Below, in pieces: positions 1-56,748 of a stretch of 64,000 nucleotides of DNA (within the stretch, counting starts at the first letter, position 1; each line of letters opens with the position of its first letter). The position numbers and the translations under genes are program-made. Under the pieces are notes generated by a model. The model worked only from the letters and a program-made list of their open reading frames with translations, did not search any database and was not told the origin of the DNA. This DNA comes from Zygnema circumcarinatum SAG 698-1b (lineage: Eukaryota > Plantae > Zygnematophyceae): NCBI GenBank assembly GCA_037447605.1, contig CM074811.1, positions 1,984,001-2,048,000 on the forward strand. The letters are read 5' to 3'.

Positions 1-506
1 AGTTACTCATAATTTCCGTAATTTTCTTTAGTCCAATTTGAGCTTTAAGATAAGAGCCATCAGGAATCAAATTTTTTTTTAGCAAAATGACCGTGTGTGT
101 GTGAGTGAGTGAGGTACTCAATATAAAAGAAGAAGTCTGGTAGTGGAATTGAAAGGAATCAAGTGCGAGAGGTTCTACAGTACAAAGAAGAGAGCACGAA
201 TCGAACAAAAAACTGCAAATACTATATCAGAAAACTTGTGGATTTCTTTTTTAATGATTTAATTTGAGCTAAAGCCATCCAAATGCTTCGAGGAACAATT
301 AACAGTCATATGTTATCCCTTCGTAGCATAAAAACCCAGAAAAACAGGGAAAATAAACTTGTAATGTTATCTTACATCGAATATGCGTCGTATTCCTACC
401 ACAATCTCACTCGAAATATGCATGTCCATTCCAAAATTTTGAGTTTTGCAAGTCTTGTAAGGTTTTACTTGTTCCCTTAGAAGTTTGATAGACGACCAGA
501 ACTCAC

Positions 507-1874
507 CGTACGCTTGCCGTCATCGGACTGAACACTGCTGCCCTTCTGCAACAAGCCGTAACGGATGCCTGGCATGAGCCCGAGGTCCTTCGCCTTCTGG
601 GGATCAAACTTTCCCTGCAGCGTTGGTAGCTCACAGACATACACCACAGCCAGGTCAGCTGGCTGTACCCTGACTCTCCCTCTGCCATTCTTAGGGCTTC
701 CATTTCCACTATTGCTAAAGCCCTCACTCTCTTTATTTGCCCTGCCGTCGTCATCAATAGGCGTAGCCCCAATTCCTACGTCCTTCGTGTCCGGAATAAG
801 TATTGCTGCTAAAATCTTCACCGTATCATCATCATAAACTGGCAATAGATCATTGGACGAGTCCAGCTTCTCCCCTGCAGTCTCCGCTTCCTTGAGAGCG
901 CCGCTTTCTTTCTGCGTATTCCCACGTCTAGGAGATCTCAACCTGCTCGGCTGCAGATCATCTCCAAAGCTCTGAGCGCGCACGACAGCGCCAGGAACAA
1001 AGGTCCTCATGGCGTCAACAAGCTTCTGCAAGTTTGAGGGTCCCATAACGTGAACTGTGGTGGATAAGTTCATCAAAGTGAGCAGGAGTCCAGGAAGGCC
1101 TCCAGCTGTCTCGCTGCAAACACGAGTAAGAAGAATATTATCTATTCGGGTGAACCGGATTTTGTGCTCCATGCAGTACCGCTGCAGGCCCTCGCCTGCA
1201 TTGAAGATAAAGCGTCGGACAGGGTTCTCCATGAACAGCATCACAGAAGGCGCGGTATCTTCAGTATCGAGCCCAGTGCCCATGATCTGCACATAAGATA
1301 GGGCAGACCTTATGGGAGCCGAATTTTTCGACCTACTAGGCGCTTTTTCTGCCACCGCAAGGAGAGCTTTTGGCGCCATAACGTCCCTCCCTCCTCCGTC
1401 AATGTTTGGCCTTTGACTCTTTCGTTGCTTTCGCGGTTCCTCCCCTTGTACCGTTTTCCCTTCGCGTTTTTTTCCAACCTTCCCTTCTTCCAAGGCCTCT
1501 TTCCCAGCTGCCTTTGCTTCTGCAACCTGACCTAAAACAACTTCCGAACTTGGAATTGCGTGCGACTTGCTTTCGTCCATTAGAGCAGCCGCAGAAAAGG
1601 GCGCACGCCAAACCTTCCTGCTGCAAAAGAAAGCTCCAGAAGCTAGCGAGCCACAGCCATTGCGAGACAAACAGCTGCTCCTTCCACAGAGACAGCCGCG
1701 AACGGCGTGCAGAGCGCCGCTGGGTGCAGGAGAGACGACGAGAGTGTGCGAAGAGAGAGGCGAGTGAGCGCCCGAGAGAGGAAATGGAATAGAAAGAAGG
1801 AGAGGGAGAGGGCGAGGGCGGGGGAGAGCGTGCGGCGCGGAGGAAGGCGCGGGCCGCAGAGGAGGCACGCGCAT
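507..1874 (-). CDS. tRNase Z, long form (ELAC2/TRZ3-4-like), first coding exon; gene continues beyond window start
   Basis: YVQIMGTGLDTEDTAPSVMLF...FIFNAGEGLQRYCMEHKIRFTRIDNILLTRVCSETAGGLPGLLLTL and exosite GKFDPQKAKDLGLMPGIRYGLLQKG match the plant long tRNase Z N-half. GTGAGT donor at 506. Start uncertain: ATG 1874 gives an S/P/R/L-rich transit-like leader; a shorter start MDESK lies downstream. Confidence 0.9.
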
Positions 1875-2531
1875 GGCGCCGCCTCTCCCTTCCTCTCTCC
1901 CGCGCGCACTGCCCTTGAGCTCAAAGCGAGAGTGAGGGGAGGCCCTGCGCCTGCGCGCTCCGGCGAGCACAGGACCGTACAACATGCCTCGTGGCCCAAT
2001 CACTGAACGCAAAGTGGGTTTGACGGAAGTACTTTGAGCAGACGGAGGGCGATGGTCGCATGGTATGCGGAGGGAAGAGGGAGGAGGACGTGGCATTAAC
2101 TCTGAAGGGAAGGCGTCCAGCGATGAAACTTTGGGAGGAAAATTCTCGTGTTGGGCTGCTGCTGCTTGTTTTCGTTCTCGTTCTCCTTACCATGGAGAGC
2201 AAGCAGCTGCTGAGTGTGGAAATTCTAATGAAGTACTCGCGGTGGGACAGCAATCAAAGTCCAAACGGGGCATAGAAGGAAGACTTCACGGGACGAACGG
2301 CCCAGTTAAACGACCAGACTGAACGGAAGAAACGAGGGCCAAAGCTACACCCAACGACAAAAAAGTGAACCACACAAAACGAAATTAAACCAAGGGAAAC
2401 AAGGAGAAACCAAAGGAAGCGAGGTGAAACGGACATTAGGGCCTATAAACAATGGGAAAACGTTCCAGAATCCTTAGCCCTTATCCAACCAATTGATGAG
2501 AAAGTCAGGGCACTCAATCGCACATTTTATC

Positions 2532-19789: not shown

Positions 19790-20580
19790 AATCTCCAAAC
19801 CGGAGACCCAAACTCTCAACCTTAAACCCTAGATCTCAAACTTGAAACCCCATATACCCTTTACCCTATAGGGTTTAGGGTTTAGGGTTTAGAGTTTAGG
19901 GTTTTCCCTAAACCTCAAATTCCATTTCAAATTCTAAACCCTGAATCTGAATCCTGAACCCTTCAAAACTTTAAACCTGAAACCCTGACCCCAAAACCGA
20001 AATTCCACCTCCGAACCTTCAATTCTAAACCCTAAACCCAAAGGTAAAGAGTATATGAATAAACCCTTAACTCTAACTCTTAATCTTTAACTCCTAAACA
20101 ATGAATCCAAAACCCTAAACCTTTAACTTCCACCCTAACTCCCAAACCCTAAGGTCGTAAGATTTTTTTAGCAAAATGAAAAGCGACAAACGATTGGTGT
20201 GCACCAGAAACAATCTCGTGTTTGTGCAAAGTACAAGAACCGGAGAAATAAAAAAAGAGAAATCCTCAATTCGTGAGTGCTCTCCATTGTTATGCAAACT
20301 CAACCGCAGGCTAAAAGTTTTTGCTGTGTATCGCAGTGCATCGTATCGTATCTCGAAATTTCACATCATGTCGAAACGAACTATATCGTATCGCCAAGTA
20401 TCACATCGCCTTGTATCGTCTTGCTCACTTACCCTAAACCCTAACCATCAATCCTACATATCGTATCGTATCGTGTCGGCAAGTATCACATCGCCTTGTA
20501 TCGTCTTGCTCACTAAACTTTAGACCCTAAACCCTAAACCATCAACCCTACATATCGTATCGTATCGTGTCATATCGTTC
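19790..20580. repeat. Degenerate interstitial telomeric repeats (CCCTAAA/TTTAGGG) with TCGTA pentamer tracts and a ~90-bp direct duplication
   Basis: gggtttagggtttagggtttagagtttaggg at 19871-19901, flanked by many aaaccct variants. caagtatcacatcgccttgtatcgtcttgctcact...ccctaaaccctaa..catcaa.cctacatatcgtatcgtatcgtgtc occurs twice (~20395 and ~20480). Confidence 0.75.
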
Positions 20581-35450: not shown

Positions 35451-35544
35451 TAGGCAGTCTACGGATCCTGCTCGTCGTTTTTAATAGTCTGCGTGTTGCT
35501 GACTATTTCCGTCATGATTAGCATTCGAAATAGCACTGACCTCC

Positions 35545-36689
35545 TCCAGTGCATACGTGACGGAGCAGTTGCTCGCACTCGTCACATTCACCACAGTGCC
35601 TCCCGGAAGGGGCCTGCTGCAGTTCAGACCCTGAAATGGAGGGAGAGGGAGAGGGGTGCAGACAGTTGGTCTGATGTCACGCAAGGCATCACACGACGCT
35701 TCGTGGTAAGAGATTTCCAACAAGACAACAAGATTTTGCACACAAAATTTGCTCGAAAGAGAACGTGCTTTCCTTTCCATAACTTCTCAGCACGATGCGT
35801 TAGCACCAAGTCCTTGAACTGACCTGGTTTTGTGCTGTGAAAGCCGCCTTGGGGATGCCATATGTTCCGTACAGACTTGTGCAGGGTAAACTGGTATTCA
35901 CTGGGACAGTATAGCTCAGCAGGCGTCCACCTAGAAGTACAGCTGCAACGAAGAACCAAGACGATGAAGTCAGCCAATTTTTAAACAGATTCAATAAACA
36001 AGAGTTACAAAATTGTATCGGTAAAACTTCGATAAAACAATCAGCTAACGTTTGAAGATATATGCACAGAATGCCTTGACGTTTGCCCCGGGCTTGCGAG
36101 TCTGTCGGGTGCGGACCGGGGAGGCAGGTGAGGGCCTCTTCGGACGCGTCCGGCGAATAGCCGAGAGGGCAAATGCACATGTACGTTCCGTTGAGCGCTG
36201 CGTTGTCCACGCATGTGCCCACGCCGCACGGATTCCGTGATGTGAACGTGCATGGAGACGCTGCCACGTGGCAAACAGGCGTAAGGCATTAGGGCGTGCA
36301 GCGGAATCACAAGAGGAGAAGGGTAATAATAAAAGTAAGCTATCGTGAAGCAAAAAAAGAAAGGAATGCTGTGGTCTGTGGCCCTTGATTTGGAGATTCA
36401 GCTGCACGAGGACAAATGCAGTGTAAAGTTGCAGCAGAGTCGATACGTGCATAGTCTTCATGCAGCATCTTGAATAAAAGCATAAGCGTAGGCATTTTTC
36501 TTACCGGGTGCACATGTCTGCGTTCCGTCTGAGTTCGTAACGTTCACAAAGTTGTCAGCACATTCGCACACGTTTGTGGTGCCGGAAGGAAAGCAGACGC
36601 CGTTGCCGCAGGGGTTCATCTGCCCCGGGCCGTACGACAGCCGCAAGACGCGGCGGGTGAAGCTGAAGGAGTTGCAAGGGTCGCTTGCT
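35545..36689 (-). CDS. Two EGF-like exons and Cys-type LysM exons of the modular gene
   Basis: NPCGNGVCFPSGTTNVCECADNF...TCAP; SPCTFTSRNPCGVGTCVDN...YMCICPLGY...TCLP; YTVPVNTSLPCTSLYGTYGIPKAAFTAQNQ/GLNCSRPLPGGTVVNV; then CSVTYALEE, the start of a probable second LysM. Confidence 0.75.
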
Positions 36690-37227
36690 GCACCGCTCGG
36701 GAAGAAGGGAAACAAAGGAGAACAGATAAACTGCTTGCTCTGGTGATCAAGTGGTACTACTTTCTTCCGAGTGTGGTTAGGCCAAAGAAAGTCGATTCTG
36801 AAACGTTCAAAACCTTTTCTGCCAGGACGCTAGTTTTCCATGGACGGAGCACTTTGACAACAAAGCATTTGGATTTGGAACTCCAGTGCATCGGCATGTT
36901 TGTATAATGTTTACGACATGGAAGACTACGTCGAGCATTACCGGACCACCATGCAAAACCAGGCAGTGAAAGAAAGCGTTTGTCAGGTCGCAACCATCGG
37001 GACTTGCTACAGTTAGTTTTTCATGTGACGTCAAGTCAATATAAAGGGTGAAGGTCTTCCACAGCAATCCCACAATGCATGCACTGCATCCAACTGCACA
37101 AAGATTCTCAGCAGCAACTAGTTTCCGTAATCTGGTATGTCATAAAGGCATCGGCTTCAGTCACCAAGGAAACGACAAAAGCCAGCAGTGCCTGTTCAAA
37201 GAACAAGCAGACACGTGGCGTTCCCAC

Positions 37228-38605
37228 CTGGAAGTTGAACGATTGGGATGAGTGGCGGTCTGACATTGATGCCGCAAATTCCGTAGCCGCCGGTCACCTT
37301 CATGTACATGTAGCCTTTGTCGCCCCAGTTGGGTCCCCAGGAATTGCGGATGATCCAATATGGCGGCGCAGCCGTCAAGTCGTAGCCCACAACGACCACG
37401 GCGTGGTCCACACCGTCGGAGAAGCACTCCTCGTCATCGAACACGCCCTGCAACAGGAAGAACATACAGCCTTGCTGAGAAAAAAACAAATGCAGTTGTA
37501 CATCAAAATACCAACTAAACCGTAAGAGGTCAGAATCAGTGACTAAGGACGCTCACCATTGCCGGGTTGTAGTTCAAAAAGCTGTCAGAACTTGCTTCGA
37601 CAGCAACCACTGCTGGCTGTTGCTGGAGAGCCAGCAAAAGGCCAAGCCAGCCGTTCACCTGGACACTCTCGTATGACAAAATGCGTACCCTGACTTCCTG
37701 CATTTTGGCGGCACAAGTCGGGTGCACTATTCAATCAAAGGCCTTGACCATTCCAGAATACTATTTCAGATATCAAGGTATGTACGTATCAATCACGAAC
37801 GGGGCATCGCAACTGAGGAAGGTGCGACTGCAAAGACGAATAAAAAAGAAGCAAACGAAGTTGACGAGCCTTGAAACTCAGAATCGGTTGCAATTCAAGG
37901 GTACATACTTGGCCCACGTTGCAGCTCGATGGACCACTATAGTTAGCGGAGGGGATGAGGCCAGCGGTAGCCGCGTAGTTGAGTGCGTCAGCTGGCTGGC
38001 CGCTGCTGCTGCAGTTAAGACTTGGTGCTGGACAGCTAAGGAGCTGGTCTTCAGCAAATCCAAGCACGGGCTGCCTCAGTGGTTGCCTTCCCGCGTTGGC
38101 AATATACCAGGCGCTTTCGACCGCTGAAATGGCTGCAAATATCCAGCATGTACCTGAAAAGGGAAGAAAAACTCATCTCCTCTCAGGAACAAGTCCTTGT
38201 AGACTCAAAAAAGTGCTATGCAATTGCTCCTCTCGCACGAACAGAGTAGTGGATGGCCTTAAATTCCTATCTAGTTTGCGGAATCTAGAAGGGTCAGCCT
38301 GTGAAACATAAAGACCTGGTCGCATGGCCAGCAGGCTCAAAACTTGGATACTCTGACAGAAGACCACATGGGTCTGGAGAATTCTAAATCTGAGTGAGAG
38401 GTGAGCGAGCACGCACTGCAGCCCCGCTGGTCCTTGGCGGGCGGCACGGCGCGCTGCCGGGCCCAGTTCCAGTTGGTGGCGACGAGCCACGACGGCGCGT
38501 CGTCCTCCGACGCGATGTACCCCGCGCTCGCATATCTAAATTACGCGTTCAACTTCGAGGACGCGTTGGCGGCGACAGGACTCGTCAGGCCGAAACCGCG
38601 CCCCT
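37228..38605 (-). CDS. Papain-family (C1A) cysteine protease domain, 4 exons, part of the modular gene
   Basis: WNWARQRAVPPAKDQRGC/STCWIFAAISAVES (oxyanion Q, catalytic C), QQPAVVAVEAS, DHAVVVVGYD (catalytic H), YWIIRNSWGPNWGDKGY (catalytic N), GICGI. Confidence 0.93.
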
Positions 38606-38865
38606 CTGTGCAGGTTTAAAGGGACACAGATAAACGCCAATTAAAAACAAAGGCCTCTTCCTACTCCCTCGCAATAACACGTTCTGCAACATCTACGCTG
38701 CAGTGTTCAACCACTCATGGCAAGATCCTTGTGTTTATTTGGACTGCTTCGTGCATTTGAGCCGCTTCTGTGACTGTGATCAACTCTAGACTTCGTTCAA
38801 CTCGGAGACTACAAGAGGAATAAAACGTCACTCCATAGAAGACCGCCTCTGTATAAAAACATACC

Positions 38866-41800
38866 AAATGTGCAAGTGGCTGGAGACTCCCTCGCGGAAT
38901 ATCCCTCCTCGCACGTGCAGGCCCCATCCAATCCGGAACAAAGGCCGCGGCCTCCGCATGCTCCGCGGGGCTGCGAAGCTTCGCAGAAACTGCGGCACTG
39001 CGAGGGGTCTTTCTGGTCGGGCGCAGACCCGCACTTGCTCGGCCACGTGTCGTCGAAGGTGAAACAGTTCCCAAAGAACAAATCATTGCACACTGGGACG
39101 CCATTAACGGTAAAGGACGGAGTTCCGGAAAAGTAGTTGTTGGCGAATCCCATGGTGGGATCTATCACTGAGTCAAGTTGCAAAGCCAATGGGCCAGAAA
39201 GAATGTTGTTTCTTAAGTCTCTGCCAAATGAAAGACAAGCGCATAAGAAAATTGGCATGGCAGAGCATTACATCCACATTCACAGGATTGGCGCAGTGTG
39301 GGGTTCCACTTCCTCATTCAGCAGTGGAGAAACAGTTGAGGAACCGTTTATGGCTATCCTCCACTCTAGTGCAGTAACTGTGTGACTTGATACCCATCAT
39401 AAATAGCGAGAACAACATGTCCTTGGGTTAGTGCTGCCATTATAACTCGTTACCCGTTCTCCTCAACTTTCAGCCTTTCCTCTCGTAGCAAAAACCCCAA
39501 TTGAACGAGCAGTTAGGTACAACTTGTGTAATCAAAGACGCTTTCCGTGGAGATCACACCAACAAGGTCATCCATGCCATGTTCGTTATACGTCAGGTAC
39601 ACTAGTATCCAAAGGAAGACATACAACTATATTAATAATAACGGTGAGCAATGCATTCGTACATTCGAACAAGCTTAGGGATTAGACTGGAATGACAGAG
39701 AAATCACAAGTCAGAAAAACTCTGAACCGTATGCATTTGGATTGGCCAGATGACTCAAGTGCTCATTCAGAAAATTCTGTAGTTCCCATGAATAATTCAA
39801 TGAGCTTTTCTAAAAGGAGACTGGTTCGTCGTCATTAAACACAAGGGCAAGGGAAAAAAACCACTAGTGTCAAACATCTTACAAGGAACTTAGGCTTCTG
39901 AAATTGTTGAACGTTGGTGGAATAGTGCCCACGAGACTGTTGGACGACAAATCCCTGTCAAGGAGCGGAGAATACGCAAAAAAATAGATCAGGGATGTGT
40001 CTTGTTATGTAAACTACGGCAAAAATGGAAGGCATTCTTCCAACAATTAAGAAATTTGCCTCGTAGAGTGTAATTTCCTCGAGTTCATGACAGTTCTGAT
40101 ACAGCTTTCAGTGAACAAGGTAGTCAGACAAGCCATGCCAAAAGAGGGGTAACATCGCTCCGACAAACTCATCCAACAACAAGTCTGAAAGACACCAAGG
40201 TTTCGGGTGACCCATGTCACGCGCAGACTGTTAAGAACTGAAACGGTCCATTCTCCATTACAATCGAGTCTGAAAGTTAAAATGACATACGCAGTAAGAA
40301 GGCTTCGCATGCTCGCCAGAGATGATGGAAGGCTCCCGTTCAAATTATTGTCAGATAAGTCTCTGCAACCAAGGACAGCTCCTTGCATTAGCCAGTCAAG
40401 TAGAACTCGTATACTCTGTTCAGGGGTCCTTGACGCACAAATGGTCATGCTCCACGAGGCTCTAGCATGGAAACCATTGCCTTTTGGGGTAAAACAGATA
40501 AGAATCAAATCATAAGGATAGTTGTGTAGCCAATGTCTTTGTTCAAGTTTTGTAACGAACAAAGTGAGAGAGACACTTTTTTTCTCTCGGGAACATACAT
40601 TTTTATTGAATATAAAATTGTGAGGTTGAGGAGCTTTACTCAAAACGAGAGAAGTTTACATTCCATACATGTCATGCCATCTATGCTCAACCCTAGATGT
40701 ACAGCCGGATGACGACGAGCATTTCAGTAATGATAGCATATAAAACCTACGTAACTACCTTGAAAGAAATCAACGACCGTGTGTTCAGCGGTTGCCTTCG
40801 TACATGCTTTATAGTAGTAGTTGGGGTTACTTTTGAAAATAGACAGCAACACTATGCTACAAGAAAATTTGTAAAATAACAAGGAACAACATGGTGTGAG
40901 TCTCACAGAGTCTGGACATTTGTAAGGTTCCCAATAGATTCCGGAATGCCACCACTTAGCGCATTATTGTCCAGCTTCCTGCTTTTCCTCGTGATACAAA
41001 GCCAAAAAAAAGCATAACATTCAACGTGTCACCTAACGACATGAAACCCTCCAAATAATCAAAGCATGACAGCGACTAAGTAAGAACCTCCTATAGGCTC
41101 GCATCCGTGGTGAAGGTGGAAAGGTGATATCGAATATCTTTCAGTATCAAATGTTCAAAGCGAAGGATGTGGTAAGCCATAAGAGCCGTCTATTTTCGTA
41201 ACTTAGTTTTCTTATTCAACTAAGGGAAGAACGCGCTGTAAGGGAAGCAATCAATTCCGGCGCGTTACCAATCAAATGCAAATAGTAAGGTCAGGAAAGA
41301 TTTATTTACAGCACTCTAAGGTTTCGAAGGTTCCCAATTGAGGCTGGGATCACTCCACCGAAATTGTTGCCGCTCAAGTCCCTAAACACAAGCAGGTCTC
41401 AAACAAAGCGGTCAGTCCTCAGTTCCTATGTCAGAGCAAAGGATAAAATCTCTCGAACAGCTGAAAAACTTAGGCAACTGCACAATCTAACTGCAAGCAA
41501 TAAAAAGAACTCAAGAAACGTATCCTTGTCATGATATTGCATACATTAAAAATAGTGAGGTTGAGGAGCTTTACTCAAAACGAGAGAAGTTTACATTCCA
41601 TATATGTCATGTCATCTATGGTCAACCCTAGATGTACAGCCGGATGAAGACGAGCATTTTAGTAACGATAGCATATAAAACCTACGTAACTACCTTGAAA
41701 GAAATCAACGACCGTGTGTTCAGCGGTTGCTTTGCTACACGCTTTATAGTAGTTGAGGTTACTTGTGAAATAAGACAGCAACGCTATGCTTCAGGAAAAT

Positions 41801-43346
41801 TTGTAGAACGACATAGACGACACAAGTTTGAACAAGATGGTGCGAGTCTCACAGCGTCTGGACATTTGTAAGGTTCCCAATAGATTCCGGAATGGCTCCA
41901 ATTAGCGAATTACTGTTCAGCTTCCTGTTTTGCCTCTCGATGCAAAGCGAAGAAAACAGCATAGCATTCAACTTGTCACCTAACGACATGAATTCCTCCA
42001 AAGAATCAAAGTATGACAGCAACTAAGTAAGAACCTCCTATAGGCTCGCATCTGTGGTGAAGGTGGAAATGTGATATCTAATTTCTTCGAGTGTCAAAGT
42101 TCAAAACGAAGGATGTGGTCAGCCATAGGAGCCGTTTATTTTCGTTACTAAATTTTCTTATTCTAGTAAAGGATAAGGAACGCGCTTTAAGGGAAGGAAT
42201 CAATTCCGGCACGTTACGGATTAAATGCAAACAGTAAGGTCACGAATGATTTATTTACAGCACTCTAAGATTTCGAAGGTTCCCAATTGAGGCTGGGACC
42301 ACTCCACCGAAATTGTTCCCGCTCAAGTCCCTAAACACAAGCAGGTATCAAACAAAGCGGTGAGTCCTCAGTTCCAATGTCAGAGCAAAGGATGAAGTCT
42401 TTCCACCAGCTTAAAAACTTAGGCAACTGCTCAATCTAACTGCAAGCAATAAAAAGAACTCAAAAACGATATCCTTGTCGTGATATTGCATACAGGATTC
42501 TGCTCCGACTGCATTCATAACATTGAATGCCGCTTTTGCAGAGTCCGATGTGTACACTCACAGCTCTTGCAGAGTATCCAAGAAACCAATGGAGTTTGGG
42601 ATGCTTCCGTTCAGTTTGAAACCAGGAAGCTTTCTGCAAGGAGAATAGATTGTTTTAAAGATAACGTCCATCCAAAGCATTATCCTAACCAGCTAAAATG
42701 ACACTTTCGAGTTATACTACTGGAATTATTCAGAAATAGGGCTCTCAGCAATACGACTTTTTTAGGTATTCACTCAGACGAAAGCATGCCACACTACTTC
42801 AACGTCAGCCTTCTGCCCTTCAGGGCATTAGCCATGAATGAAGCAGCGAGGGGATATACGCACTCAAAACTGAGTCGCAAGACTTGCCCAGTGGCCATTC
42901 TCCCAAGCATGAAAAGCACTAAACTGTCATGTCCGGAACAAGAGCCTAACCTATGAAAAGTCTAACACACAGTGACGTTATCTTTTTCTCAGCGCGTTCC
43001 TGAAAACTGCCTTGCCGTCACCGGAACTGACGACACTCCACGGTGAAGCGAAATCGCCCATAAATGTAGATACTGCACTATGTGTAAGGACCGGATCCCG
43101 CATGCAATCAACATTTTACGTAGAGGAAGCAATTGAGAGACTGATAGGGAGCCATAACCTAGTTTCCTACGATCCATGTAATAGGCAATATAAGGAAGAG
43201 TAAGTGGACGTACACTGAAACCAGGACCTGATTATTATCACACTTCACTCCGCTCCATCGGCACAAAGAAACACCAGGTTTCCAGTCGACTAACTTGTTT
43301 CTAGGATCGCTTACAATTGCCGCTTTGAAACTCAGAAGAACTTGTT
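38866..43346 (-). CDS. Second LRR block: LRRNT exon, seven 72-nt LRR exons and an LRR-cap/EGF exon
   Basis: 43214-43346 EQVLLSFKAAIVSDPRNKLVDWKPGVSLCRWSGVKCD. 72-nt exons at 42562-42633, 42259-42330, 41853-41924, 41310-41381, 40907-40978, 40291-40362, 39883-39954 (e.g. DLSGNNFGGVVPASIGNLRNLRVL). Then DLRNNILSG...CRSFC...CGGRGLCSGLDGACTCEEGY. Confidence 0.9.
40610..42495. repeat. Tandem duplication of a ~945-bp unit carrying two LRR exons
   Basis: gtgaggttgaggagctttactcaaaacgagagaagtttacattcc at ~40620 and ~41555. Paired exons DLSGNNFGGV(I/V)PASIGNLRNLRVL and KL(D/N)(N/S)N..IPESIGNLTNVQTL occur in both copies. Confidence 0.92.
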
Positions 43347-43678
43347 CTGCACAATAGCATAGAAGATATTTTACATTACTTACAAGTGAGCGTTCTGTTG
43401 ACCTCTCTAGGAATCTGATGCAATATGATAACTTTTAGTGTCGTGTGCAGAGGATTATTACAGATCTCTCGTCAAAAAGAAACTAACTCCCCATCCGATA
43501 GCCAAATGATAACAAAACAAGAATTGACTGCAACACAACTTCGTAGTGATCTTCAAGTTCAACGATTGTGCAGACTCGAATCCAAACATTCCAAAATGAT
43601 CAGAAGAAAGACAGGGGCGAACTGTAACACTACAAAACAGAAGCCATAGGAGGTGGCAAGGAACAAGGCGAAGAGTAC

Positions 43679-45151
43679 CAGCAGCGGTAAGGGGAGGAGG
43701 GAAGGAAGGAGAAGCTCTCGGAGGGGGCATTCGAGGAGGGGGTCGAGGGCTGAGAGGAGGTAGACGCGAGGGAAGGGGAGGAGGAGAGAGGCTCGGAGGT
43801 GGTGGTGAAGGAGGAGGAAGGGGTGGTGGAGGACGGGGAGGAGGAGAGAGGCTCGGGGTGGTGGTGAAGGAGGAGGAAGGGGTGGTGGAGAAGGGCTTGG
43901 AGGGGGTGGTGGAGGAGGAGGAAGGGGTGGTGGAGAAGGGCTTGGAGGGGGTGGTGGAGGAGGAGGAAGGGGTGGTGGAGAAGGGCTTGGAGGGGGTGGT
44001 GGAGGAGGAGGAAGGGGTGGTGGAGAAGGGCTTGGTGGAGGGGGTGGTGGAGGAGGAGGAAGGGGAGGTGGAGGGGGTGGTGGAGGAGGAGGAAGGGGTG
44101 GTGGAGAAGGGCTTGGAGGGAGTGGTGAACGCGGAGGACGGGGAGGAGGAGAGGGGCTCGGAGGGGTGTGGTGAAGGAGGAGGACGGGGTGAAGGGCTTG
44201 GAGGGAGTGGTGAACGCGGAGGACGGGGAGGAGGAGAGGGGCTCGGAGGTGGTGGTGAAGGAGGAGGAAGGGGTGGTGGAGAAGGGCTTGGAGGGGGTGG
44301 TGGAGGAGGAGGAAGGGGTGGTGGAGAAGGGCTTGGAGGGGGTGGTGGAGGAGGAGGAAGGGGAGGAGGAGGGGGTAGGCCGCGGAGGAGGGGAGAAGGG
44401 GTGGTGAAGGCGGAGGAAGGGGGGGAGGAGGAGGGAGGCTCGGAGGTGGTGGTGAAGGAGGAGGAAGGGGTGGTGGAGAAGGGCTTGAGGGGGTGGTGGA
44501 GGAGGAGGAAGGGGTGGTGGAGAAGGGCTTGGAGGGGGTGGTGGAGGAGGAGGAAGGGGTGGTGGAGAAGGGCTTGGAGGGGGTGGTGGAGGAGGAGGAA
44601 GGGGTGGTGGAGAAGGGCTTGGAGGGAGTGGTGGAGGAGGAGGAAGGGGTGGTGGAGAAGGGCTTGGAGGGAGTGGTGAACGCGGAGGACGGGGAGGAGG
44701 AGAGGGGCTCGGAGGTGGTGGTGAAGGAGGAGGAAGGGGTGGTGGAGAAGGGCTTGGAGGGAGTGGTGAACGCGGAGGACGGGGAGGAGGAGAGGGGCTC
44801 GGAGGTGGTGGTGGAGGAGGAAGGGGTGGTGGAGAAGGGCTTGGAGGGGGTGGTGGAGGAGGAAGGGGTGGTGGAGAAGGGCTTGGAGGGGGTGGTGGAG
44901 GAGGAGGAAGGGGTGGTGGAGAAGGGCTTGGAGGGAGTGGTGGAGGAGGAGGGCTTGGAGAGGGAGTGGTGAACGCGGAGGACGGGGAGGAGGAGAGGGG
45001 CTCGGAGGTGGTGGTGAAGGAGGAAGGGGTGGTGGAGAAGGGCTTGGAGGGGGTGGTGGAGGAGGAGGACTCGGAGAGGGACGTCGAGGAGGGGGTCGAG
45101 GACTCGGAGGAGGTGGACGCGGAGGAAGGGATGGAGGAGGCGATGTTGAAG
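43679..45151 (-). repeat. 1473-nt exon of 45-bp minisatellite units encoding a Ser/Pro-rich (HRGP/extensin-like) stalk
   Basis: Flanked by cag| and |gt, phase 1-1, no stops. The unit translates PPPPPSPSPPPLPPP, with internal compensated register shifts. Confidence 0.85.
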
Positions 45152-45798
45152 CTGCAGTAATTCAGGGCACTTTATGAGTTTCCGTTCATACTTAAAGGTG
45201 GATTCACTTCTTCCATAGATTACATATTCTAATCAAAGCACGTCCCTATTAACGTTCTGGGATGATGCAGAACGAAATCGAAACTATTCAGAAGAAAATA
45301 GAGTTACTACAATTCTTTTGTCGTGATATTTTATCATCGACGTGCCTCTCAGGCATCTCCACAGAAAATCAGATGCCTATGTCACTTATCGAGCTACGCA
45401 ATTCTGACTTTGAAAGCAGCAAGGTCAAACTCGCAGGGTATCTAGCTACTGCAAATGGGGCTGCGATATGTTATGGCTTGCACAGGATTGTAATTCATCG
45501 AGAAGATTATCGCAAGCTTCAAACATGATATCGAAACGGCACTTTCGATACATCCTAATAAACTTTGCGCCATTTACTGAATGAGATTGCAGAGTTCACC
45601 ACGTAATGCTTGCGACATGCTTCTATAAGTTCGAGAATTGAACCACATATATTGGCGGCATCACATGGATCGCATTAAGTGTGCTCTATCAACAACGACA
45701 GTGTAAAAGTTGATAGCAATGCGATAGTTTCCACAACCTCTGCCACCCTGTACTTTTCCTTTCTTGTGAGTATTTACAAGCAGCAAGTTGCAACTCAC

Positions 45799-46760
45799 CA
45801 CACGTGCCCGATGCCAGCGCATATCCCTTGTCGCATGTGCACGTGGCCGTGTCGTACCCGCACGTGCCGCGGCCCCCGCACGCTCCCTCGGGCGAACCGC
45901 TCTGGCAGAAGGCCGCGCAACCTTGCGAAGGTCTCTGCGCTTGAGCTGCGCCACATCCTGTGATATCGCGATAAATGCAGTTGTTGTTGTTGTAGTTGGA
46001 GGAGCAATAAGGTTGCCCGTTCTTTGTAATGTTGATTGGCCCGGAGAAGTAGTTGTATTGGAAATCTAGGTCCTGAAGGTAATCGCTAGCAAGAGTTATG
46101 GAGCCAGTCAATTTGTTGTTGTTGAAGTACCTGATGACAATAAGGGTGGCGCGTTAGAGGGAGAGAGAGAGAGGAACTTTCCAACAAAACCCATTCAAGT
46201 CTTCCTTGTGTCATAGCCACTGAAAACATTCGCTCGTGCTGTCTGCAAAGTTTCTGACTCCTTCACGACCCTACACAACCTGCAGCCTGCAAATAGTGAA
46301 CCCCTAAATCTCTAAGCCTTTCCCTACACCCATTCTGCCTGCAATCCCATCAACCTTGAACCCACTAAACCCCCATAGCTTCTGAAGCCTTTAACTGATA
46401 AGCCCCTAAAACCCCTCGAACTTAATGGCCAGTCTGAACCCTAGCCCTAATCCGTAAACTCTAAATCCTAAACTCTCTACGACAAAGTCCAATCTCTTGC
46501 ATGCAAAAAGTGCGCGTTATTGGGCGTCAAAAAAGCCCACGCCGTGACAGAAGTGACCAAAAATATGGCATAAACTTAAAACTCATGCAAGCGCGAAATA
46601 AATGTGATAGTTTGAGAGGTACAAATGCTCGGCCGAGAGCAAAAAATTCAAACTGCAGATGCAGCGTTATCGATGCAGTGGTGCTTACAGGTACTGCAGT
46701 CCGGTGAGTTTAGAGATGAAGCCGGACACTCTCCCCTCCAGTTTGTTGCTGCTCAGGTCC
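45799..46760 (-). CDS. End of first LRR block plus Cys cap and EGF-like domain
   Basis: 46689-46760 DLSSNKLEGRVSGFISKLTGLQYL; 45799-46130 YFNNNKLTGSI...LDFQYNYFSG...NCIY...QRPSQGCAAFC...CGGRGTCGYDTATCTCDKGYALASGTC. Confidence 0.88.
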
Positions 46761-47477
46761 CTATAGACATACGCAACGACAAAAAGTTCAACAAAAAGGA
46801 TAATGCTGGTTCTGGACTGAACAGGATTAAATCAGGTATCCAACTCTACGTTCTATCGAAATCTCAAACGCAGTCTCACAAAAAGGGAGTGCGAGATTAA
46901 AATTTTACTCGCATATATTGCAAGATGCAAAGAAGTCACTGCACTTATGATTTCAGAAAAAAAGCCATACAAATTCATACAAATCATACAAGTTTGCGAG
47001 GTTCCCAATAGAGTTCGGGATGACGCCCCTCAGAATTAGTCAAGCGTCTACATGTGAATTGGCATCCACCGATCTTCATAAAAAGCTTCGCGAGCTCCAC
47101 GGATGTTTCGCAGAAAAAAAAAAGAAAATTGAAACTCGGTTGAATGATTGCTCAAATGCAAACCGAAGCTCCAAGTTGCCACGTGCCAACCGACCAATGA
47201 GCAGCTTCGCGGCATCTCCTCCTCCATGGGGGGCGGAGGCGGCGGAGGGCTCTGCGCAGCATATGGCATGGAGGAGGAGATGCCGCCATGGGCCACGCGC
47301 AGTTGACACGACACGGGTCCTCTCAAGGGCGGAAGGCACCGCTCGCAGGCACCGCCAGGAGGAGGAGTGGCGCAGGGCAGAATTTGAAGTGAATCTGACA
47401 CTGCGACGTGATTGGTTGGAAGATTCTCGACACGTCAGTATGATCTGATACGGGGCGAGGGGCTTTCAGCTTCTTAA

Positions 47478-50425
47478 ATACTTACAAGTATTGCAGATTC
47501 GCAAGGTTGCCGATAGAATCCGGGACAAACCCACTTAGGGAATTATAAGCCAAGTCTCTGCCAAAAATTAAAAAAAAACTAGGCACTGAATAAACATGCT
47601 GCCACGACTAGCATTTTTATCACTGGCATTCCTCTGTTTGGCATTTCCATCACTTTCATTTCAGATTTCTGGGGAAAATTACTCACAAGTAGGACAGAAT
47701 CGCAAGGTTCTTGATAGAATCCGGGATAGACCCTATTAGGGAATTTGAAGACAGGTCTCTGCCAAAAAAAAAACAAGGCACTGAATAAACATGCTGCCAC
47801 GACTAGCATTCAACTCACTGGCATTCCTCTGTCTGACATTTCTATCTCTGGCAATTCAGATTTATGGGGAAAAATACTTACAAGTATTGCAGATTCGTAA
47901 GATTGCCGATAGAATCCGGAATTGACCCCGTTAGGGAATTATAAGACAAGTCTCTGCCAAAAATTAAAAAAAAACTAGGCACTGAATAAACATGCTGCCA
48001 CGACTAGCATTTTTATCACTGGCATTCCTCTGTTTGGCATTTCCATCACTTTCATTTCAGATTTATGGGGAAAAATACTTACAACGTTTGCAGATTCGCA
48101 AGGTTGCCGATAGAATCCGGGACAAACCCAAATAGGAATTATAAGACAAGTCTCTGCCAAAAATTAAAAAAAAAACTAGGCACTGAATAAACATGCTGCC
48201 ACGACTAGCATTTTTATCACTGGCATTCCTCTGTTTGGCATTTCCATCACTTTCATTTCAGATTTATGGGGAAAAATACTTACAAGTATTGCAGATTTGC
48301 AAGGTTGCCGATAGAATCTGGGATAAACCCTGTTAGGGAATTAGAGGACAAGGATCTGCCAAAAATAAAAAAACATGGGAATTGAATAAACATGCTGCCA
48401 CGACTAGCATTTCTATTACTGGCATTCCTCTTTCTAACATTTCTATCACTTTCATTTCAGATTTATGGGGAAAAATACTTACAACCAAAAAAGATTCGCA
48501 AGGTTGCCGATAGAATCCGGGACAAACCCAAATAGGGAATTATAAGACAAGTCTCTGCCAAAAATTAAAAAAAAACTAGGCACTGAATAAACATGCTGCC
48601 ACGACTAGCATTTCTATCACTGGCATTCCTCTGTTTGGCATTTCCATCACTTTCATTTCAGATTTATGGGGAAAAATACTTACAAGTATTGCAGATTCGC
48701 AAGGTTGCCGATAGAATCCGGGACAAACCCACTTAGGGAATTATAAGACAAGTCTCTGCCAAAAATTAAAAAAAAACTAGGCACTGAATAAACATGCTGC
48801 CACGACTAGCATTTCTATCACTGGCATTCCTCTGTTTGGCATTTCCATCACTTTCATTTCAGATTTATGGGGAAAAATACTTACAAGTATTGCAGATTCG
48901 CAAGGTTGCCGATAGAATCCGGGATAAACCCACTTAGGGAATTATAAAACAAGTTTCTGCCAAAAATTAAGAAAAAACTAGGCACTGAATAAACATGCTG
49001 CCACGACTAGCATTTCTATCACTGGCATTCCTCTGTTTGGCATTTCCATCACTTTCATTTCAGATTTATGGGGAAAAATACTTACAAGTATTGCAGATTC
49101 GCAAGGTTGCCGATAGAATCCGGGACAAACCCACTTAGGGAATTATAAGACAAGTCTCTGCCAAAAATTAAAAAAAAACTAGGCACTGAATAAACATGCT
49201 GCCACGACTAGCATTTCTATCACTGGCATTCCTCTGTTTGGCATTTCCATCACTTTCATTTCAGATTTATGGGGAAAAATACTTACAAGTATTGCAGATT
49301 CGCAAGGTTGCCGATAGAATCCGGGACAAACCCACTTAGGGAATTATAAGACAAGTCTCTGCCAAAAATTAAAAAAAAACTAGGCACTGAATAAACATGC
49401 TGCCACGACTAGCATTTCTATCACTGGCATTCCTCTGTTTGGCATTTCCATCACTTTCATTTCAGATTTATGGGGAAAAATACTTACAAGTATTGCAGAT
49501 TCGCAAGGTTGCCGATAGAATCCGGGACAAACCCACTTAGGGAATTATAAGACAAGTCTCTGCCAAAAATTAAAAAAAAACTAGGCACTGAATAAACATG
49601 CTGCCACGACTAGCATTTCTATCACTGGCATTCCTCTGTTTGGCATTTCCATCACTTTCATTTCAGATTTATGGGGAAAAATACTTACAAGTATTGCAGA
49701 TTTGCAAGGTTGCCGATAGAATCTGGGATAAACCCTGTTAGGGAATTAGAGGACAAGGATCTGCCAAAAATAAAAAAACATGGGAATTGAATAAACATGC
49801 TGCCACGACTAGCATTTCTATTACTGGCATTCCTCTTTCTAACATTTCTATCACTTTCATTTCAGATTTATGGGGAAAAATACTTACAACCAAAAAAGAT
49901 TCGCAAGGTTGCCGATAGAATCCGGGATAGACCCAAATAGGGAATTATAAGACAAGTCTCTGCCAAAAAGTAAAAAAAAAGGCACTGAATAAACATGCTG
50001 CCACGACTAGCATTTCTTTCACTGGCATTCCTCTGTCTGACATTTCTATCTCTGGCAATTCAGATTTATAAGGAAAAATACTTACAAGTATTACAGATTC
50101 GTAAGGTTGCCGATAGAATCCGGAATTGACCCCGTTAGGGAATTATAAGACAAGTCTCTGCCAAAAAGAAAAAAAAAAGGGCACTGAATAAACATGCTGC
50201 CACGACTAGCATTTCTCTCACTGGCATTCCTCTGTCTGGCATTTCTATCTCTTTCATTTCAGATTTATGGGGAAAAATACTTACAAGTATTGCAGATTCG
50301 CAAGGTTGCCGATAGAATCCGGGATAAACCCCGTTAGGGAATTATGAGCCAAGTCTCTGCCAAAAATTAAAAAAATACTAGGCACTGAATAAACATGCTG
50401 CCACGACTAGCATTTCTATCACTGA
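47478..50425 (-). repeat. Tandem array of 15 ~200-bp units, each one 72-nt LRR exon plus intron
   Basis: Exon low coordinates: 47486, 47687, 47882, 48083, 48284, 48483, 48684, 48885, 49086, 49287, 49488, 49689, 49888, 50086, 50285. Each is bounded by ttttggcag| and |gtaag (one gtgag). Consensus DLSYNSLSGFVPDSIGNLANLQYL. Confidence 0.95.
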
Positions 50426-50753
50426 CACTTTATGGAATGGAGACATTCAGAAATTTTTCAACTTTTTCTGGTTACCGATGGCAGGTGAAATGGTTCCTTC
50501 AACGCCGTAGGACCATAAAACTCCATGACATAACATGACTAGCATTTCATAAGGCAGGTTAACTGGGAGAGCGTCAGAAGAAGAAAGGGCCGCGGGCAGG
50601 AGAAGGACTGCTCCGGGCGGCATTTTCTAGCCGCTTTCTGAGGAGTCTGCTTCCCGCAGACCCTCCTCGCAGCCTCGGGCTGCAGTTCAGCAGCTATGGA
50701 ATCCGCGGAGCCCCCAACATCACAAGCGGGTCTTCAGTCAAAGTGTGGCTCAC

Positions 50754-51128
50754 AGCACAGTAACGCGCCCACTTGCGTCGCATGTGATATCGATCCAGTT
50801 GCTGCAGAGGCGGTTACTCGACTTCCAGGAGGAGAGCTGTGAAGGGTTGTTGAATGCCGCTTTGACAGCGAGAAGTGCGTCCCCTGCGCCCAAGCGCAAG
50901 CAGGTGCAGGATTAGATTGAGGCCGCGGTCCGCTTCAAAAAGCACAAAGAGAGGCCATGCCACGGGCAGGCCGCCTCTCCCCTGCTTCCATAGAGGGCGG
51001 GCGGGCGGGCCGCGGCGGCTCACTGTCTCGCGGGTCGATGGCCTGAGCGGCGGCTTCGCGCGGGGCGGCGGCGGCGGCAAAGAGGAGGAGCGCCGCCGCG
51101 AGAGAGAGAGAGACCGCGCGCGCGCCAT
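50754..51128 (-). CDS. Signal peptide exon and first LRRNT exon of the modular gene
   Basis: 51024-51128 AVSLSLAAALLLFAAAAAPREAAAQAIDPRD; 50754-50883 RDALLAVKAAFNNPSQLSSWKSSNRLCSNWIDITCDASGRVTVL, ending in phase 2. Confidence 0.85.

Positions 51129-53024: not shown

Positions 53025-56748
<3,724 letters not shown>

Follow-up and report, generated by a model that had tools for sequence, protein, structure and literature searches.

The array and its host gene

The window analysed here, a stretch of 64,000 nt from Zygnema circumcarinatum SAG 698-1b, carries a tandem array of 15 LRR exon and intron units on its minus strand (Table 1). Tandem Repeats Finder placed the array at 47476-50424 (period 201, 14.7 copies, 91% matches, score 4828), and reading of the splice sites resolved 15 LRR exons lying head-to-tail, which confirmed the array of 15 units with near-identical introns given in a preliminary description. 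We numbered the units 1-15 in the order of transcription, starting from 50356. The acceptor is TTTTGGCAG in all 15 units, the donor is GTAAGT in 14 units and GTGAGT in one, and the introns are 123-130 nt long and 84-100% alike. Each exon encodes one plant-type LRR; 14 exons are 72 nt long with phase 2-2, and the remaining one is 71 nt. Every junction codon is TT/A (Leu; the slash marks the intron), and the intron splits the beta-strand as xxL/xLxxN. Altogether, the array contains 11 distinct exon sequences and 9 distinct introns.

Intact units number 13 of 15. For these, the earlier statement that each unit is a symmetric 72-nt exon held; it failed for unit 2, which has an in-frame TAA, and for unit 12, which is one base short. 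Both broken units share the strong splice sites of the others. The peptide variants listed in that description were all present, and PDSIGNL, which it had called almost fixed, was found in 14 of 15 units. A non-coding satellite was rejected in view of the splice sites, the frame and the conservation of the framework.

Pfam domain searches run exon by exon gave matches to LRRNT_2, EGF and Peptidase_C1, and the scanned exons had no match to ROC, COR or NB-ARC. A membrane anchor or transmembrane helix and a kinase domain were likewise not found, the exons downstream of the array being of extensin, LRR, EGF and papain types. Since phases are compatible from the LRRNT exon to the last exons, we read all of them as one gene, in which the array would encode the LRR domain in the first module of a large secreted LRR-EGF-extensin-LRR-EGF-papain-EGF(-LysM) protein. 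The host gene (35541-51128, minus strand) has the appearance of a two-module mosaic, LRR-EGF followed by extensin and then by LRR-EGF-papain-EGF, and relatives have LysM repeats in the region of 35541-36687. At the 5′ end, no in-frame ATG was found upstream of the signal-peptide-like stretch before a stop. The DNA flanking the degenerate first LRR exon carries array intron remnants.

Several other features were observed in the window. In the intron after the array, a perfect inverted repeat of 20 nt encloses a 38-nt loop at 47209-47286, and a weaker second arm lies at 47349-47367. Telomere-like TAGGGTT / AACCCTA runs lie inside the scaffold at 19790-19904, 20384-20571 and 46280-46470, including degenerate runs in an intron of the array host gene. 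A long open frame at 480-2186 (minus strand) encodes a domain of tRNase Z type (Pfam Lactamase_B_4, E 1.8e-14).

Table 1. Positions of the array, its host gene and a neighbouring gene within the window
Feature	Position	Strand	Remarks
FGGY-type sugar kinase gene	53025-56385	minus	intact, 8 exons, apparently one GC donor; used as assembly-quality control
First exon	51024-51128	minus	ATG out of frame with signal-peptide-like hydrophobic stretch; shift in CG/TC microsatellite
LRR N-terminal cap exon	50754-50883	minus	Pfam LRRNT_2, E 4.5e-10
Degenerate first LRR exon	50451-50522	minus	open 72-nt LRR without AG acceptor or GT donor
Tandem array	47478-50424	minus	15 LRR exon and intron units, period about 201 bp
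Unit 2 exon	50086-50157	minus	in-frame TAA at 50093-50091; CAA there in 11 other units
308-bp stretch, units 3-4	49620-49927	minus	exactly equal to 48215-48522 (units 10-11), lag 1405; starts inside an exon
Youngest block, units 5-9	48533-49702	minus	identical stretches of 530, 392, 366 and 355 bp, each at a whole-unit lag
Unit 12 exon	48083-48153	minus	71 nt, frameshift, C run one base short; assembly error possible
LRR exon	46689-46760	minus	72 nt, phase 2, unique intron
Last LRRs and Cys-rich EGF-like cap exon	45799-46130	minus	
Extensin-like Ser-Pro exon	43679-45151	minus	1473 nt; Pro-rich frame switches 5 or 6 times, net shift zero
Second LRRNT_2 exon	43214-43346	minus	E 2.2e-10
Seven more LRR exons	39883-42633	minus	72 nt, phase 2
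Two-exon duplication	40614-42494		949 bp, within the seven further LRR exons
Second LRR and EGF-like cap exon	38865-39220	minus	
Papain (Peptidase_C1) domain	37228-38605	minus	four exons; Cys-Trp, His and Asn motifs readable
In-frame TAA, first papain exon	38543-38541	minus	
Two EGF-type exons and two further exons	35541-36687	minus	run into N gap at about 35450

Growth of the array and variation on the binding face

Exact matches within the array fall at whole-unit lags (201, 402, 603, 804, 1005 and 1405), the last of which is a jump of seven units. Units 5, 6 and 9 are identical, with unit 7 being 1 nt and unit 8 3 nt off, and exons 5, 6, 7 and 9 share one sequence. The other unit lineages (3/10, 4/11, 2/13, 14 and 1) show 9-32 nt differences. 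Units 3 and 4 differ from units 10 and 11 by 1 and 2 nt per unit, and the nearest neighbour of unit 13 (47882) is unit 2 (50086), with 9 differences. The preliminary description had noted a pair at 48284/48483 (units 11/10) that comes back at 49689/49888 (units 4/3), and a resemblance of 47882 to 50086, taking both as a footprint of unequal crossing over. Both likenesses are real, the former being the 308-bp exact match in Table 1, and unequal crossing over is supported by the whole-unit lags together with the seven-unit jump.

In a four-gamete test, 60 of 378 site pairs were incompatible, 15 of them within the exon, although some may reflect repeat mutation at hypervariable sites. The minimum number of recombination intervals was Rm=4, with the same reservation that repeat mutation may explain some conflicts. 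Since three of these four intervals fall inside the exon, units do not move as whole cassettes, and recombination in the array takes the form of ordinary crossing over or conversion, driven by homology and indifferent to where exons begin and end. Units 3 and 10 carry a Phe-Trp variant (49888-49897 and 48483-48492, minus strand) in the form of a six-base patch that looks like the poly-T acceptor tract of the intron; a local template switch could in principle have produced this patch, though this is speculative.

Nucleotide diversity among units was 0.121 in exons compared with 0.058 in introns, so substitutions are not spread evenly over the two, and variation is concentrated on the concave face, as had been suggested. 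Face positions followed the established consensus of plant LRRs, and the five codons concerned (15 of 171 columns) hold 18 of the 59 derived alleles (permutation p about 5e-6), these counts being distinct alleles among related copies and not independent events. The amino-acid-changing rate per site is 1.11 on the face, compared with 0.15 for framework and convex positions (p=4e-5) and with 0.22 changes per site in introns, the last being a difference of about 5-fold (p=2e-5). Introns alone were rejected as a neutral yardstick, since silent sites of the exons changed 2.6-4 times faster than introns, at a rate of 0.58 outside the variable codons (p=0.03 against introns) and 0.94 overall. Measured against these silent sites, face dN / exon dS was 1.2-1.9, which is not significant (p=0.40 and 0.12).

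Purifying selection thus acts on the scaffold of framework and convex residues, and the face is free to change. Diversifying selection that holds exon variants against intron homogenisation is suggested, and positive selection goes no further than that because exon silent sites outpace introns too. The older 949-bp duplication in the same gene has the usual pattern, with 41 of 330 intron positions (12%) differing compared with 3 of 72 (4%) and 7 of 72 (10%) in its exons, which argues that the pattern of the array is not a general property of introns in this genome.

State of the gene and alternative explanations

The lesions of this copy are the TAA in unit 2, the TAA at 38543-38541, the degenerate first LRR exon, the out-of-frame ATG and the 71-nt unit 12, to which the repeated frame switches of the extensin exon may be added. 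When all units are spliced in, translation ends about 89 residues past the start of the LRRNT exon, and when unit 2 is omitted it ends at residue 307, after unit 12. The open reading frame does not run through the protease, as a TAA stands before the papain domain; this codon sits in unique sequence, where the related proteins P0029 and P0053 have Leu. The neighbouring sugar kinase gene, which we take to be D-ribulose kinase-like, reads through cleanly, so unique sequence in this region is not error-ridden. Because that gene and other unique exons are clean, the two TAA substitutions are harder to dismiss than the indels in homopolymer or microsatellite tracts, which may be assembly errors. 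Taking together the two nonsense codons, the dead exon and the frameshifts, we judge this copy considerably more likely to be a dead or dying allele than not.

It is doubtful, though well worth weighing, that an array of the same origin belongs to a gene that is alive, its lesions being assembly errors or private to the strain, and its 15 units being constitutively spliced into one long LRR arm. The indels do lie where polishing with short reads fails, namely C runs, CG/TC repeats and the tandem array; splice sites are intact and uniform in 15 of 15 units, most other exons are open, and relatives are expressed. However, both TAA codons are substitutions, one of them in unique sequence beside error-free exons, and the first LRR exon has neither of its splice sites. 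As for the word content of sequencing runs, 61-69% of the words of the stretch are present in six DNA runs, 27-31% in six runs of unknown kind (which could be RNA) and 9% in one run guessed to be RNA. Words contained in exons would make up about 21% of the total, and these shares decide nothing. There is also a very slim chance that part of the copy number reflects an assembly artefact, with the identical units 5-9 mis-expanded or collapsed. Exact repeats reach 530 bp, no DNA run contains more than 69% of the words and indel-like errors lie nearby; against this stand the 11 distinct exons and 9 distinct introns, the structured higher-order repeats, and a total array length of only 2.9 kb.

A special cassette design for the array was rejected, since the same exon layout is found throughout the family. 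The layout is common to eight other LRR exons of the gene and to Closterium relatives, and is thus not special; among plant LRR genes, the symmetric 72-nt exon is the ancestral arrangement (PMC3050792). What is distinctive in the array is only the youth of its duplications. Skipping of any unit in frame is a possibility, which is not in itself evidence of skipping. The preliminary description had proposed a combinatorial device for receptor diversification, working by exon shuffling or skipping, and this was not supported: the exon layout is ancestral, recombination takes place inside exons, strands are few, inverted spares and signals are absent, and the gene has inactivating lesions.

In its splicing form, such a device would skip units combinatorially to give a repertoire of faces, with units 2 and 12 as skipped, spare non-coding cassettes comparable to those of Ectocarpus ROCO genes. 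The exons are symmetric, their junctions divide each beta-strand, and the first intron already contains a degenerate LRR exon; inactivated exons in LRR arrays and LRR splice variants have been reported for brown algae (PMC3341825, PMC11378527). We nevertheless regard this account as improbable. Units 2 and 12 have splice sites as strong as the rest, and no docking and selector pairing between the array and the flanking introns was found above shuffled sequences (16-30 of 40 shuffles were as strong). Introns of 123-130 nt do not force exon exclusion. Pairing of the Dscam type was rejected, as duplex energies were within the range of shuffles, and the longest inverted match inside the array is 8 nt. 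The splice repertoire from the array would be small, with seven distinct strands built at the junctions in all and QYLDLSY accounting for 7 of 14. The protease would be stopped regardless, and skipping the 189-nt exon with that stop removes the start of the mature papain. The fuller claim, namely that the gene is expressed while routinely skipping broken and other units, that a land-plant-related alga splices a homogenised array into a repertoire of secreted LRR faces, and that intron homogenisation actively feeds conversion inside exons, is in our estimate very improbable.

Programmed somatic rearrangement, in which the array would be assembled from donor cassettes as in VLR genes, is extremely unlikely. 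Patches of more than one base are frequent in exons (10 of the 27 distinct patches), as donor conversion would give, but their share is similar in introns (5 of 16). Pattern scan and blastn found no plus-strand (inverted spare) LRR exons in the gene, no inverted or outlying copies of array units and no donor copies were found elsewhere in the window, and no RSS-like motifs were detected. Somatic recombination has also never been shown in brown algae, being unreported for their ROCO genes (PMC11378527).

The explanation we favour, and consider somewhat more probable than not, is germline unequal crossing over and conversion of LRR exon and intron units in a probably decaying gene of a secreted LRR-papain protein. 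As each LRR is encoded by an ancestral-type 72-nt phase-2 exon, copying exon and intron together leaves the frame intact. Some five older unit types were multiplied in this way, one of them (units 5-9) very recently, and became a patchwork through crossovers or conversions, which fall within exons and introns alike. Framework and convex residues were kept by purifying selection, with face residues changing freely or under diversifying selection. Conversion may have homogenised the introns while selection kept exon variants, which would leave exons more diverged than introns. The ligand of the protein may have been of wall or microbial origin, and the array may have tuned the length and surface of the binding arm from one generation to the next, and not during the life of an individual. 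The present copy would be a dead or dying allele of that gene.

Relatives and known LRR exon systems

A profile of the two LRR and EGF exons recovered 43 relatives, the named ones coming from Mesotaenium and Closterium gene sets and one transcript assembly. A protein homologue search with a single LRR-EGF exon gave no match, and the pattern of the array exon had no exact match in metagenome contigs. A search with P0029 found 14 proteins, mostly of Closterium, with the LRR-papain-(EGF)-LysM or a related body; full-length relatives with the LRR-EGF-papain-EGF-LysM body exist, two of them from transcript assemblies. The papain exons of Zygnema are 42-62% identical to P0029 and P0053, and the LRRNT-LRR-EGF-Peptidase_C1-EGF-EGF order is present together with sequence similarity to the streptophyte family. 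Streptophyte LRR-EGF-papain-EGF-LysM proteins (for example, Closterium CLOM_g12756, and P0029 and P0053-P0065) thus have the same body and the same 72-nt LRR exons. Compared with them, the Zygnema gene adds an LRR-EGF-extensin head, which holds the array, and a stop before the protease. At four Closterium loci, the same 72-nt LRR exons were found, but neighbouring introns were just 28-60% alike and the LRR exons were not covered by a tandem array; the Closterium genes checked are thus without a homogenised array, unlike the Zygnema gene. Closterium Naga37s-1 has two tandem LRR-papain modules in one gene model (locus L005:1541-17975). A paper search on Zygnematophyceae, LRR and papain gave no description of the family, and the main text of the Zygnema genome paper (PMC11096116) has no mention of LysM.

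The locus is a snapshot of growth and decay in genes with one LRR per exon, in which the same gene pairs a young array, more diverged in exons than in introns, with an older duplication of normal pattern. The array lends support to a birth-and-death mode of evolution in the secreted LRR-papain-LysM proteins, an unstudied algal family. An apparently broken copy is a poor test of the brown-algal hypothesis of LRR repertoires made by splicing or recombination.

Tandem cassettes for variable binding surfaces are also used by the mutually exclusive exon clusters of Dscam and by VLR assembly in lampreys. Unlike these systems, the Zygnema array showed no docking and selector pairing, donor cassette pool or incomplete germline gene. 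The proposed analogy with brown-algal 72-nt phase-2 LRR exons is supported (PMC3341825, PMC11378527). The ROCO arrays of Ectocarpus and Saccharina likewise encode a 24-residue LRR per 72-nt phase-2 exon, with variable concave-face residues, intragenic recombination and inactivated exons inside the array (PMC3341825, PMC11378527). In the Zygnema assembly, the corresponding, apparently inactivated exons are unit 2 (stop), unit 12 (frameshift) and 50522-50451 (without splice sites). Brown-algal ROCO genes also have splice variants (PMC11378527). Their host is a ROC-COR GTPase and that of Zygnema is a secreted papain mosaic, and the Zygnema array differs from them in having near-identical introns and no inverted spare exons. 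The boundary xxL/xLxx, matched by consensus reading, resembles the Ectocarpus kinase type II and not type I; type II exons have shown no shuffling (PMC3341825).

Land-plant LRR receptor kinases (ERECTA, SERK and rice group 5) have the same phase-2 intron at the first Leu of xxLxLxx, and land-plant genes with one LRR per exon share the LxxLxLxxNxLxGxIP repeat, the LRRNT_2 cap and growth by exon duplication (PMC3050792). Compared with those kinases, the duplications of Zygnema are younger, with introns still 84-100% alike, and no kinase or membrane anchor was found. Tetrahymena LRR arrays have 90-bp exons, thousands of genes and an associated retrotransposon (PMC6564038), none of which was seen in the Zygnema window. 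However, they are built of the same kind of tandem phase-2 exon and intron units grown by unequal crossing over, and their youngest units keep nucleotide similarity, as the units of the Zygnema array do (PMC6564038). The route of growth is thus already known, and the Zygnema locus is a young, face-variable array in an unstudied algal protease family.
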